Notes: generated by a model not told the origin, from the sequence alone. Shown: positions 32,687 to 46,270, counted from the first letter of the stretch. The stretch is 64,000 bases of DNA from Saccostrea echinata (GCF_033153115.1 NW_026889758.1:49972001-50036000), one strand, 5' to 3'. Translations and numbers: made by a program.

Positions 32687-34221
32687 ATGAAGTAAGTTTT
32701 GCTTAATAATTAGTTATACACTACTGAAATGATTTTATAATCATTTTTCCGTAATTAGTTTAATATAGAAAAAAGAATGTAATTTTCTTTTCATTTAAAA
32801 TCTATACCGACTTGCGACCAATTCTCTGACAGAACTGCCATGAAAAATGTTGATTGTTATATACATATTTTGCATAAAAAAATTGTAACCATAGTGAACC
32901 TCTCTCAGACAGGCCACTGAATTTTTTTTTACACTAATTATTATTTATTAAAAATGATTGTACATTTGTAACAGTTCAGGCGCAAAACCTCGATGTAAGT
33001 TTTTTATTGCTGTCATACTACATGTATATAAGCTTTTGAAAAAAAGCCTAAATTATAATAATTTTTGCTGCGTAAAATAGCAAATTATTTTAAAATTGGG
33101 GGGGGGGGGGGTTCTACGACATGTGCCATATCTCCCCTAGTTCAGATATTCGGGATATATCGTACATTGCACATTTCTTTAATTTTTTAATTTTCATTTC
33201 AATGAACCAATGAAATGAGATATTTTTGTATATTGAGTAATACATGTTTTGAAAAAATCCTCATACAAATCATGTCCGAGGACTAATATTATACTCATAA
33301 TTTCAGAAAAGGTGTATAAATTAACATCGAAATAAATTAATCATGCATTTATCCGTTGCACACGTTCAACTTAATCAAGAAACTTTGTAAAAAAAAAAAT
33401 ATGTATTTTATAAAAATTAAAAGAATTTTCGTCAAACTCCAAGCAAAGAGGAATTTGGTCACCAACCAGTATTTTGCTGCAAGCAAATAATGCAGTCATT
33501 TATTTAAAACGTCCTTATGATTCTTCATATAAGATTTTTTTTTCTTTATCCAGGTACAGTTTAGCAATACTAATGGCTTTCTGGACGGGTGTGAGTGCAA
33601 TTTACGAGGTACCCGTACAGAATGGGAATGTCTGGGGAAATAATAGGTCTGCTCGGAAAATGAAAGGCTGGTGCGTGTTTGAACTAAACGAATTCAGGGG
33701 CCCAGGAGACATCAAAATGGACCTCATCTTTAACAAACCAACGAGAAATCTTCAGGTTAAGGGTATATTTTTATGCATTCGCAAATTCTCACCACTTTCC
33801 CACTTTAAAAAAAAATAAAGCAAAGAGTGGTTTTTCCCGACAAATATGATCGATTGTATGGGGTTATTGAACTTCTATTGGTGAATACAAGGCACATTGC
33901 AATACTACGAAAATGGAGTGTCTAGATTAGCCTTTTCAGATACAGACAAAAAAGAAACACTGAATATATATTTTTCATCAATTTCAAATAAAGAAAGTAC
34001 GAATTGCATACTACGTAATGTATTATTTATGTAATGAAAATATTTCTGATATTCAAATACATGATCAAGAGGCTCTAGATATTATTTCGATCTTGCCTGT
34101 TAATAAAGCTACTGGTCCAGACAACACAAGTCATCGAATGTTAAAATGCACTAAATTTACGATATCAAACCCCTTATGTATGCTTTTTATGCCCCCGGAT
34201 CGGGGGTATATTGTTTTTGTC

Positions 34222-34253
<32 letters not shown>

Positions 34254-37200
34254 TGTCAACTTTAACCTTGCCCTTAACTTTTGATTGGTTGGACCTATGA
34301 CTTTTATATTTCACATGTGTATTCCTTGTGACATGGGCCTTCTTTGGGTACCATCATATTTGACCTTGACCTTGAAGTTTGACCCACTTTTACAAAATTT
34401 TATGAGACTTTAGTTTTGGCCATAACTTCTGAACAGTTGGTGCTTGGGGTTTCAAACTTCACATGTGTATTCTTTGTGACAAGGCCTTCCTTTGGATACC
34501 AACAACTTTGACCTTTTGACCTTGACCAGCTGACCTTGACCTTGGAGTTTGGCCTATTTTTGAAAAAACCATAACCTTGGCCATAACTTTTAAACAGTTG
34601 GTGCTTGGGGTTTCAAACTTCACATGTGTTTTCCTTGTGACAAGACCTTCCTCTGGATATCAACCTCTTTTACCCTTTGACCTTGACCTAGGAGGTTGAT
34701 CTACTTTTGAAAAACGTTAACCTTGGCCATAACTTTTGAATGGTTGGTGCTAGGGCTTTCATACTTCATATATGTAATCCTTGAGACAAGACCTTCCTTT
34801 GGATACCAACAACTTTGACCTTGACCTTGACGTTTTACTTACTTTTGAAAAAAACTTTAACCTTCGCCATAACTTTTGAACAGATGCAGCTAGGGCTTTC
34901 AAATTTCACAGGTATATATTCCTCGAGACAAGACCTTTCTTTGGGTACCAACATTTTTTATCTTTTGGCCTGGATTTTTACTTGCATTTGAGAAACTTTA
35001 ACCTTCGCCATAAGCTGCTATACGGGGGCATCAGTGTTTCACAAACACATCTTGTTTACACATTTTCAGAAAAATCCTTTCCAACCATGTATTGTTTCTA
35101 TTTAAGAAAGACGATTATTTATCATGTATTAATTATTTCAATTAACTCAAAATTAAGGAGAATTTTTCATTATCGGCATTTAAATTAAAACTTTTTAATA
35201 TCAACGTCTGTCCTGTAACTGTTCAATATCGCACCATTCCAATGATCCTACCATGCTTTAAGATTGGCCTATGTCATTAAGGCTATAAGGTACTAAATTA
35301 CTAAATCAAATTAAAAATTTCAATTTTGTGTGAAAATAAACACATCTTACCTAGCTGACACTTCCTATCTAAATATTGCGGTTGAGGTTGACCAGACGAC
35401 ATTTCTTGTTCACAACGGGGCGTTCGATATTGAACGCTTGCATTTGGAATGATTCGGGGCATACTCGTATACAAAATGCAAACTCAGTGTTCTATAAAAC
35501 ACCAAGATACTGAACGCTAAAATTCTCTAGACTTTTGGTAGTCTTTTCTAATATTATTGACTATTTATTAGCTATATAATAATAATAAATATAACAATAT
35601 AATAGTAATCAAACTCAGTGTTCAATAAAACGCCAAGATACTGAACGCTAAAACTCTCTAGACTTTTAGTAGTTTTTTTTTTTATTATAGACTATTTATT
35701 TGCTATATAATAATAATAAATATAATAATATAATAATAATCAATAATTATGAATCATTTTGATCTTTCCTTTGATTGTCAATGAATTAGTTAATAAGATC
35801 GAGCTTCATTCCTTCATAGCTGGAAGTATGATAAATTGCGTTCAGTTCTATATCAAATTATTCTGAACGCCAGCTATATCAAAAGTATAATACAAATAAA
35901 AATTGTGCTACCGTTTCACGTGAATTCCGGCCTTTATTTTTTCTCCCAGTTCGACTAGATTAGTGTTCTCTTACTCTGTACAATCCGACATTCTGTATAT
36001 TCCGAACAAAAATTTGTGTCCCAGTGTTTTTCGTATTAAATTAGACGGGTTTCACGCCCTCAATTTCTTAGATGGATAAAAGAAAATAATTTACATGTAA
36101 TTGACATTGTTGAGATAATCAAAAACATACAATATAATTTACGATTTTTATTTTCTTTAACAGGTATGGATAATGAATATCGATAAAATACTGAACAAGG
36201 GACGGGCATATGAATTATCAAGCAAGTATTCGTATTCCAATACGATGCTGAAAGTTGAATTCATTTTGACATACAGAGGTAGCAAGAAGAAGTTTCCAAT
36301 AGGAAGATGCATCAGTAACATAACGCCACCCTCTACAACACCACAAACGCGCACTACGCATGCGTCAGTGACACCACAAGCAAGTTCCACGACAGTGACA
36401 CAAAAACCAACGACAACGTCAAAACCACGATACTCCACAACTACAATACCAGTGTCCTTTTCTGACGTCATACCGATATCAGTGAAGGGACAACATTGGA
36501 GCGTTGGAAATGGCTATAGAATGACCGGAGTCTGTATATTCCAGATTAAGCCAGTTCTTAACTCCTATAAAATCATGGTGGAATTTGACAAAGAAACTTA
36601 CCACATGACGGTAACAGATGTGTATTTATTTACAAGATAGCTAGATTATCACAATTTCTATCATACTATCTGCACTAACTTTGTGGTAACTATAGAAATC
36701 TGATTTTAAAGTAGATTCATTATAACTTAGGGAAAACATGTTTGTTATAGGAGTGGACAATGGATATTGAAGATCAACAGTCAAATGGGCTATGGTATTA
36801 CTTAAAAAGTAGATGGCCTGAGAGGCAAAATGAAATTAGATTGAGGTTTCACGTTGACTTTTATTCTCTTCCTATGCCAACTGGAACGTGTAAAATTGAT
36901 AGAAATGGTCAAACTCCGACACCCAAACCTTCAACTGCAATGCCAACACCAACTTCCAAAGCACCCACTCAGCAACCTTCGACCGCAGCGCCCACACAAA
37001 AACCTTCAACTGTTGTACCAACACAAAAATCTTCAACTGCAGCGTCAACACAGCAACCTTCATCAGCAGCGCCGACACAAAAACCTTCAACTGCAGCACC
37101 AACACAACAACCCTCAACCGCAGCGCCAACACAGAAACCTTCAACCGCTGCACCAACACAGCAACCTTCTACTACTCAAGCACCTACAGGTGGGTAATGT

Positions 37201-46097: not shown

Positions 46098-46177
<80 letters not shown>

Positions 46178-46270
46178 TGACATGAAATATTTTGTTTATT
46201 TCCAGCAAACGACGCTGTTATACACGGTGATGGGGTACAGTTCAGTCTCGACTCCTCCTTACCTCATTAA
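32687..46270 (+). CDS. Secreted modular expansin-like protein, long form: signal peptide, two CBM2-like modules, Pro/Thr/Ser linkers, expansin (DPBB + CBM63); 592 aa
   Basis: Exons 32687-32691, 33554-33755, 36164-36610, 36751-37189, 43467-43522, 43967-44110, 44410-44500, 44918-45062, 45637-45821, 46206-46270 give one frame of 1779 nt. Signal MKYSLAILMAFWTGVSA. The 37189/43467 junction is inferred from phase only. Confidence 0.7.
34018..34183 (+). mobile_element. LINE RT N-terminal fragment in an intron
   Basis: 'LDIISILPVNKATGPDNTSHRMLK..ISNPLCMLF' carries the pre-RT K(A/S)xGPD motif; cut by the element at 34184. Confidence 0.7.
34184..35057 (+). mobile_element. Full-length HINE-type element, same family as 25431-26272
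   Basis: Same 5' TTTATGCCCCCG, GTCT microsatellite, internal repeats and 3' CGGGGGCATCAGTGTTTCACAAACACATCTTGTT. Confidence 0.85.
35479..35741. repeat. Direct tandem duplication, about 131 bp x2
   Basis: CAAACTCAGTGTTC..CCAAGATACTGAACGCTAAAA.TCTCTAGACTTTT present twice. Confidence 0.9.
36961..37176 (+). repeat. Coding 27-bp repeat (APTQ[QK]PSTA x8), mucin-like linker
   Basis: Eight in-frame 9-aa units with mainly synonymous third-position variation. Confidence 0.9.
37348..38132 (-). mobile_element. 3'-truncated HINE-type element, opposite orientation
   Basis: Reverse complement of the 34184 element: GGGGCATAAAAA end, GACA microsatellite, near-identical ~148-bp units. Confidence 0.85.
38540..39095 (+). 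mobile_element. Degenerate Penelope-like reverse transcriptase fragment
   Basis: 'MLEFFIDNICVVFGDRVFQQIVGIQKGTNSPPLLAD' and downstream 'FNSTFRY..IDDVLSLNN'; stops and frameshifts. Confidence 0.75.
41271..42988 (+). mobile_element. tRNA-derived SINE split by a LINE insertion
   Basis: Head with GGTTCGAATC at about 41292; body resumes at 42782 (GGCGTTGGCACGATAAAG..CTCACTGCTCAATGGCC) and ends in (CAAT)n; possible TSD ATCAATG at 41264-41270 and 42989-42995. Confidence 0.75.
41358..42773 (+). mobile_element. 5'-truncated non-LTR retrotransposon (RTEX-like): RT C-terminal half and Cys/His tail
   Basis: YADD motif; 'RLRLSAHDLKIERGRY..CEIC..IEDEFHFVLKCPRY'; one frameshift in a T run near 42205-42212; AATAAA + (AAAC)n tail; TSD ACTTTGAA at 41350-41357 and 42774-42781. 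Confidence 0.9.
43337..43345 (+). promoter_or_regulatory. TATA box of an internal (short-form) expansin promoter
   Basis: TATAAATAG 90 nt before ATG 43427; similar spacing in the paralog (48865 to 48946). Confidence 0.6.
43427..46270 (+). CDS. Expansin-like protein (EXLX/YoaJ type), short secreted form, 241 aa
   Basis: Exons 43427-43522, 43967-44110, 44410-44500, 44918-45062, 45637-45821, 46206-46270. Signal MTFLILFSVFGLLEG; motifs GTYY, GGTCSY, VALN, SCGMCFRV, VKDLCPEC, GSLDLA, QCPV, GSNHYYLKLQIRN, PFRVRLTAANGE, GVQF; AATAAA at 46401. Confidence 0.9.
44566..44612. repeat. (CT)n(AT)n microsatellite
   Basis: Direct reading. Confidence 0.9.
46105..46174. repeat. (TA)n microsatellite just upstream of the last expansin exon
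   Basis: Direct reading. Confidence 0.95.

Follow-up and report, generated by a model that had tools for sequence, protein, structure and literature searches.

A candidate chimeric gene joining cellulase-derived modules to an expansin in the oyster Saccostrea echinata

The stretch of DNA analysed here is a 64-kb window of the genome of the rock oyster Saccostrea echinata (C9:49972001-50036000; genome searches were made in the 923-Mb assembly). The window is AT-rich, with a G+C content of about 32%. Between positions 32687 and 46270 its plus strand carries ten exons, every junction of which is of the GT-AG type. When joined, the ten exons form a frame of 592 codons, shown by a local check of length and stops to be free of internal stops and to terminate as ...GDGVQFSLDSSLPH* at 46270. 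The last six exons encode an expansin. The first four specify a signal peptide (MKYSLAILMAFWTGVSA) followed by a first module of about 100 amino acids, a Thr/Pro linker, a second module of the same size and a linker of about 100 amino acids rich in Pro, Thr, Ser, Ala and Gln. A phase-0 intron falls at the equivalent point of each module. The coordinates of all these features are collected in Table 1.

This arrangement is not a product of chance, since the expansin part corresponds to an annotated protein of the same genome and the modules have paralogs, 88-92% identical, in cellulase genes of family GH9. The exons, the motifs, the two modules and the Pro/Thr linkers listed in an earlier note on this DNA were all found where that note had placed them, and its model for the 3' part of the gene proved correct, including the small last exon that ends in ...GVQFSLDSSLPH*. 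On balance we favour the view that the locus is a compound gene and that the chimera is a real translated product, which would target the expansin to cellulose in digestion.

A host-encoded expansin

The last six exons translate exactly (100%) into XP_061174761.1, a 241-amino-acid entry described as "uncharacterized protein LOC133183887 [Saccostrea echinata]". The motifs GTYYG, KDLCPEC, SLDLAE, GSNHYY, LQIRN, GVQF and DGFW are all present in this protein; the first six bear out the likeness to Bacillus EXLX1/YoaJ that the earlier note had drawn. The polar residues of domain 1 that correspond to Thr12, Asp71, Glu75 and Asp82 of EXLX1 are conserved in it, and so is the aromatic platform of domain 2. 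A family alignment of 26 mollusc sequences shows no variation at D114, the Asp of LDL, and next to none at T34, the Thr of GTYYG.

Searches with single sequences gave faint signals. Pfam analysis of single exons produced a weak Expansin_C match only, and comparison of single exons with Protein Data Bank (PDB) sequences by phmmer yielded marginal matches to the Clavibacter expansin, Phl p 1 and Phl p 2, besides spurious Kelch matches. A word search with one exon retrieved only unspliced open reading frame (ORF) fragments from related oysters. The whole of XP_061174761.1 stayed below the Pfam gathering scores, with 15.0 bits for Expansin_C (cut-off 24.6) and 13.1 bits for EXPB1_D1 (cut-off 27); across single exons and proteins, EXPB1_D1 scored a sub-threshold 13-21 bits. 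The family is too divergent for Pfam calls on single sequences, and the tests of profile and fold described below therefore override these scores.

The genome search disclosed only two expansin copies, both inside the window. Exon 5 of each was used as query in a profile search of 1.8 billion representatives, followed by a word search. The former returned full-length relatives of about 250 amino acids, plus Kelch noise. The latter, which covered lengths of 192-612 amino acids, yielded 28 relatives, nearly all of 233-254 amino acids. Bivalves are represented among the word-search relatives by Mytilus ("exlX"), Potamilus, Sinanodonta, Ylistrum and Saccostrea; the search of representatives added Mya, and a cluster look-up added Ostrea, Saccostrea cucullata and the Crassostrea protein "Expansin-yoaJ" (K1QR45). 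Gastropod relatives came from Haliotis, Biomphalaria, Lymnaea, Physella, Lottia, Patella, Babylonia and Bradybaena, and one relative came from a chiton, Liolophura. The Liolophura sinensis protein (XP_064609550.1) has a C-terminal tail of about 100 amino acids rich in Pro, Thr and Lys; linker-like extensions thus occur elsewhere in the expansin family.

A profile made from the 26 mollusc sequences matched expansins of known structure over both domains: 9ms5 with E=2e-20 (profile positions 30-222), YoaJ/EXLX1 with 4e-19, the Clavibacter protein with 7e-15, the Talaromyces protein with 6e-12, maize EXPB1 with 4e-7 and Phl p 1 with 2e-6. The AlphaFold2 model of XP_061174761.1, built from the same alignment, reached a predicted local distance difference test score (pLDDT) of 90.6 and a predicted template modelling score (pTM) of 0.86. 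When the model was submitted to Foldseek, the top 12 matches were all expansins, with E values from 1e-15 to 1e-10 over some 200-240 columns and template modelling (TM) scores of 0.76-0.81 normalised to the bacterial targets. Together, profile, model and structural neighbours confirm the complete two-domain expansin that the earlier note had proposed: the 3' half of the locus encodes a true expansin, with a double-psi beta-barrel and a CBM63-type sandwich, belonging to a mollusc-wide "expansin-YoaJ-like" family. By analogy, the oyster protein would loosen walls or cellulose without hydrolysis.

Annotations of bivalve expansins were noted in the main survey of how expansins are distributed, that of Chase et al., who left their host origin unconfirmed (10.1101/637728). 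This caution, and the fact that the closest solved structures are bacterial, at 24-27% identity, could be taken to mean that the expansin stems from bacterial or algal contamination or from a very recent transfer. The probability of such an origin is negligible. The gene contains five GT-AG introns, and it lies together with host repeats, a nearby retroelement and a tandem paralog inside a 54-Mb contig; its relatives of about 240-250 amino acids are spread over bivalves, gastropods and a chiton. Both contamination and recent transfer are refuted by the gene structure and by this distribution across molluscs. A search of bacterial genomes with the mollusc profile, limited by its pattern, found no relative. 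The oyster expansin is a genuine host gene, as evidenced by its five spliceosomal introns, its tandem paralog, its mollusc-wide relatives and the surrounding host repeats; the earlier note had argued against contamination on similar grounds, and rightly so.

The tandem paralog lies 5 kb downstream, at 48946-50713 on the plus strand, and follows the same six-exon plan with a signal-peptide exon of its own. Its exon 5 is 61% identical to that of the first copy. Residues invariant in the family are replaced, GTYYG by GMFYE and SLDLAE by VPALPE. The paralog may serve in binding only or may be neofunctionalised. For its last intron the donor appears to be of the GC type (TTAG GCAAGT at 50459). The last intron of the first copy contains an (AT)39 microsatellite at 46098-46175, 30 bp before the acceptor of the final exon.

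Origin and constraint of the upstream modules

A genome search with module 2 identified only two other loci, at C2:7.79 Mb and C9:54.0 Mb. Both share the signal peptide, the modules and the linkers with the window, and in both the linker exon runs uninterrupted into ...APTGAPVNTAHDYGFILRESILFYEAQQAGYL... The sequence containing this segment matches Pfam Glyco_hydro_9 (PF00759) with E=3e-10, above the cut-off, and more GH9 exons lie downstream. The modules of the window are 88-92% identical in amino acid sequence to those of the two GH9 genes. At the DNA level, blastn showed the segment 32433-37192 to duplicate the 5' flank and the first four exons of the GH9 genes, the exons being 89-92.5% identical and the flank and introns 74-86%. 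The homology, the last letters of which are ...ACAGGTG, stops at 37192, right after ...CCTACAGGTG, which marks the boundary between linker and catalytic domain; this breakpoint lies about 160 bp before an array of a 146-bp satellite. The sequence identifies the upstream cassette as an incomplete copy, 79-92% identical, of the genome's own GH9 cellulase genes, comprising their 5' end without the catalytic domain. The idea that the module copy had lost its start codon was dropped when a first exon of 5 nt was read (ATGAA gtaagt).

The earlier note had likened the modules to the N-terminal carbohydrate-binding module (CBM) of molluscan GH9 cellulases. This likeness is borne out in that the modules are paralogous to those of the oyster's own GH9 enzymes. 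For one bivalve GH9 cellulase, CjCel9A, the literature describes a CBM on the N-terminal side of the catalytic domain (PMC6662262).

The two complete GH9 cellulase genes lie on the minus strand, at C2:7786000-7795999 and C9:54002000-54011999, and differ from each other in the modules by a synonymous divergence (dS) of only about 0.017. The pair is explained either by a segmental duplication of very recent date or by a region duplicated in the assembly, close to the end of C9. In the C2 locus, weaker matches lie about 9 kb downstream and hint at another 5' region of related sequence.

Arrays of the 146-bp satellite, which also occurs as a 161-bp variant, are found at 34416-34965, in the second module intron, and at 37352-38036, after the GH9 breakpoint; the two arrays are in opposite orientation. 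In all four sequencing runs considered below, they show very high contig depth and many internal joints. They probably explain most of the shared words by which the runs had been ranked. A truncated non-LTR (long terminal repeat) retroelement of the LINE (long interspersed nuclear element) class has left a reverse-transcriptase ORF at 41316-42600 on the plus strand (Pfam RVT_1, E=2e-10), inside the 6.3-kb intron that separates the modules from the expansin.

The loss of the catalytic domain, the satellite and LINE sequences that flank the break, and an NCBI gene model that begins at an internal Met are all features that might be expected if the cassette were a decaying fragment of a GH9 pseudogene, leaving the expansin as the only gene. 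Several findings speak against such a fragment. Compared with either GH9 gene over 202 module codons, the copy has a dS of about 0.27 and a nonsynonymous divergence (dN) of about 0.045, hence a dN/dS of 0.17; yet the 366 codons of the module frame contain neither stop nor frameshift, and the splice sites and the TATA box are all kept. If the window copy had evolved neutrally and the parent had been perfectly constrained, the pairwise ratio would be at least 0.5. Ratios of at least 0.5 are rejected, since only 21 of the 48 changes are nonsynonymous (P=9e-4). In addition, exons 3 and 4 are represented in contigs of the sequencing runs and the introns are not. These findings indicate that the module cassette is intact and under constraint, and we regard a decaying pseudogene as unlikely, indeed as a distinctly improbable account of the locus.

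The earlier note had further called the modules CBM2-like, a designation that the present analysis does not confirm. Pfam CBM_2 (PF00553) gave no match at E<=1 on the exon translations or on the Babylonia protein XP_076439114.1, and none at E<=0.1 on a 178-amino-acid protein that NCBI annotates from the module exons. Searches of the oyster genome with the families PF00553 and PF01357 found nothing; they are uninformative, having missed the known expansin too. A profile of the modules found no match among PDB sequences, and the AlphaFold2 model of the 178-amino-acid protein, based on a shallow alignment, was unusable (pLDDT 43.8). The nearest neighbours in a language model were CBM_2 clusters, with scores of 0.76 for the 178-amino-acid protein and 0.90 for the Babylonia module, which serve as leads only. 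Membership of the modules in CBM2 is thus not established; that they are the N-terminal modules of the cellulase itself is.

A splice between modules and expansin

Contigs from four public sequencing runs were placed on the interval 32400-38399; such contigs give no measure of abundance. In run X2 one contig fits the genome up to 37189 and continues for another 255 letters, the first 30 of which (AGGGAGCAACACATCAAGGGATTCTAAATC) are identical to 43467-43496 and to no other place in the window. In run X3, from another study, a 126-nt contig also stops fitting at 37189 and has 28 letters left over; here the match is one of position. Contigs of run X2 cover module exons 3 and 4 (for example 36244-36526), and the depth of non-repeat intron sequence is zero, as RNA would give. 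An artefact of the assembly graph is not a likely source of the junction because the two genomic sites share no sequence at this point.

The intron implied by the contig, 37190-43466, starts with GT and ends with AG, and a pyrimidine-rich tract precedes the acceptor (ttctgttttctgtctttggtttgctag). The junction is in frame: the G at 37189 and the AG at 43467-43468 compose a GAG codon for the very Glu that the expansin frame has here. Across the join the protein sequence is ...QAPT-E-GATHQGILNLYHQKYNGD-GTYYG..., with GATHQGILNLY at the start of the expansin side, and the junction-spanning peptide of the predicted chimera is ...QAPTEGATHQGILNLY... Use of the acceptor at 43467, within expansin exon 1, removes the signal peptide of the expansin and keeps its mature N-terminus. 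On the other side, the donor draws its GT from a Gly codon, GGT, of the parental linker and its positions +3 to +6 (GTGGGT) from the new sequence past the breakpoint. When this donor is left unused, translation reaches a TAA stop at 37195-37197 and gives a module-only product of 366 codons (APTGG*); an ATTAAA motif lies at 37221.

The last of these features bears on a different explanation, namely that the locus consists of two independent neighbouring genes, one for a secreted module-only protein of 366 amino acids and one for an ordinary expansin, and that the junction stems from a rare conjoined or read-through transcript without function. A TATA box, an ATG and a signal peptide belong to the plain expansin itself and are kept in its relatives, and the ATTAAA lies 24 nt past the TAA. 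Several further observations count against a functional chimera. NCBI annotates two genes, the 241-amino-acid expansin with its own ATG and a separate 178-amino-acid module protein, "DKFZp434B061-like", whose model begins at a Met inside exon 3 and runs to ...QAPTGG* at the TAA after 37189. The junction 37189|43467 is represented by one contig with visible sequence and one positional match, and the RNA nature of the runs is a guess. None of the contigs of the four runs falls on module exons 1 and 2, a weak point given that there are holes inside exons 3 and 4 as well. The database search, which covered 192-612 amino acids, returned neither the 592-amino-acid product nor any other oyster chimera. 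The constraint on the modules could equally be explained by a stand-alone secreted protein made of modules only, and it is by analogy, from the place of the modules in GH9 cellulases, that they may be expected to bind cellulose.

Against the two-gene explanation, the splice sites of the junction are canonical, the reading frame is preserved exactly, and the join lands no more than three codons from the likely site of signal-peptide cleavage; the junction was seen, at least by position, in runs of two studies; and the donor falls exactly at a domain boundary. We consider two independent genes the less probable explanation, albeit one to be taken seriously. The earlier note had described a single fused gene. 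The in-frame junction in a contig of a public run and the open frame of 592 codons agree with that description. The promoter, ATG and signal peptide that the expansin has of its own, together with the two NCBI models, do not, and they imply that the fusion is at most one isoform.

The compound gene that we favour could have arisen as follows. A partial duplication would have set the promoter, signal peptide, two modules and linkers of a cellulase some 6 kb ahead of the expansin. At the breakpoint, a Gly codon, GGT, would have combined with the new sequence downstream into the splice donor CAG GTGGGT, and the acceptor would be supplied by the pyrimidine-rich stretch that encodes the expansin signal peptide, with CTAG after it. 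Splicing from 37189 to 43467 would trade the expansin signal peptide for a signal peptide, module, linker, module and linker. The full-length chimeric mRNA, exons 1 and 2 included, would probably be transcribed from the cellulase-type promoter and would encode a secreted module-module-expansin protein of 592 amino acids, able to tether the wall-loosening expansin to the cellulose of ingested algal or detrital particles. The plain 241-amino-acid expansin would still be made from the downstream promoter. The chances seem evenly balanced that the locus is, in this full sense, a young and lineage-specific chimeric gene, in which a partial duplicate of a cellulase captured a neighbouring expansin to form a functional secreted protein acting in digestion.

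Table 1. Coordinates of the module cassette and the expansin gene in the 64-kb window.
Feature	Coordinates	Strand	Remarks
TATA-type box TATAAATAG of module cassette	32585..32593	+	Within 5' flank 32433-32757, which shares about 86% identity with that of the GH9 cellulase genes
Module exon 1, ATGAA gtaagt	32687..32691	+	Start codon and two bases of codon 2
Module exon 2	33554..33755	+	Remainder of signal peptide (MKYSLAILMAFWTGVSA) and first half of module 1
Module exon 3	36164..36610	+	Second half of module 1, Thr/Pro linker 1, first half of module 2
Module exon 4	36751..37189	+	Second half of module 2 and linker of about 100 amino acids rich in Pro/Thr/Ser/Ala/Gln; donor CTACAG gtgggt
Chimeric intron, 6.3 kb	37190..43466	+	Holds satellite array, LINE fragment, and the expansin's own TATA box and ATG
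TATA-type box TATAAATAG, the expansin's own promoter	43337..43345	+	
Expansin exon 1 (MTFLILFSVFGLLEGATHQGILNLYHQKYNGD)	43427..43522	+	Own ATG at 43427; internal acceptor ttgctag AGGGAG at 43467
Expansin exon 2	43967..44110	+	Start of domain 1 (GTYYGAGTGGTCSY...CGMCFR)
Expansin exon 3	44410..44500	+	Domain 1, including KDLCPEC
Expansin exon 4	44918..45062	+	SLDLAENGDGRW, end of domain 1, start of domain 2 (GSNHYYLKLQIRN)
Expansin exon 5	45637..45821	+	Most of domain 2 (CBM63-type); weak Pfam Expansin_C match
Expansin exon 6	46206..46270	+	C-terminus ...ANDAVIHGDGVQFSLDSSLPH; stop codon 46268-46270

Significance and comparison with known systems

Animal expansins have rarely been studied, and the locus settles the question of a host gene for an oyster. 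The steps of domain shuffling are visible in it with unusual clarity: the parent genes, a breakpoint at a domain boundary, a new donor, a cryptic acceptor in the region of signal-peptide cleavage, purifying selection on the modules and a spliced contig. Should the interpretation hold, the locus would be a natural, host-made counterpart of the bacterial and nematode CBM-expansin fusions and a case of animal domain shuffling between two gene families active on plant walls. If the chimera is made, oysters would direct to cellulose, next to their GH9 cellulases, a factor that loosens walls without hydrolysis; this has a bearing on the use of algal and detrital cellulose by filter feeders. The expansin family is already known from annotation, and both bacteria and nematodes are known to have CBM-expansin fusions. 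A fusion made by the host from the modules of its own cellulase through exon shuffling is probably new, no description of one having been found in the literature and databases searched.

Among mollusc proteins, the 241-amino-acid product is a member of the expansin-YoaJ-like group exemplified by Magallana gigas K1QR45 / XP_011442014, Mytilus coruscus exlX and Saccostrea cucullata XP_062586782. It is 84% identical to the representative of the Crassostrea cluster, with which it shares length, signal peptide and six family-invariant Cys residues; the motifs GTYYG, DLCPEC, DGDGRW and KLQIRN are common to it and its mollusc relatives. Across the 192-612 amino acids searched, those relatives lack the two GH9-type modules, which at this locus are added by the chimeric splice.

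One annotated gastropod expansin, the 343-amino-acid expansin-YoaJ-like protein of Babylonia areolata (XP_076439114.1), has an N-terminal module of about 130 amino acids. It differs from the oyster chimera in having a single module and no long linker, and it resembles the oyster modules only marginally (BLAST E=0.006; hhalign probability 2%). The Babylonia protein may be a CBM-expansin fusion in another mollusc, probably the outcome of an independent event.

The oyster expansin has the same two-domain fold as Bacillus subtilis EXLX1/YoaJ and other microbial expansins (3D30, 9MS5, 4JCW), and it keeps their polar residues and the aromatic pair of domain 2. It departs from these microbial proteins in its sequence (24-27% identity), in its intron-bearing gene, in extra Cys pairs and in an N-terminal ILNLY...GD segment conserved in molluscs.

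The N-terminal CBM of the abalone cellulase HdEG66 is assigned to CBM2. As in cellulases of this kind, the modules of the window stand in N-terminal position, ahead of a Pro/Thr linker as in the two GH9 genes of the oyster. Unlike these molluscan GH9 cellulases, the window copy lacks a catalytic domain, the place of which would be taken by the expansin through splicing.

Nematodes possess proteins that combine a CBM2 with an expansin-like domain, such as Gr-EXPB1. Bacterial expansins fused to carbohydrate-active domains are likewise known (Chase et al., 10.1101/637728). The layout of the predicted chimera is the same as in these fusions, with a putative cellulose-targeting module ahead of the wall-loosening one. 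In contrast to them, the oyster modules derive from the host's own GH9 genes by partial gene duplication and appear to be spliced into a signal-peptide exon, and they are two in number, with long Pro/Thr linkers.

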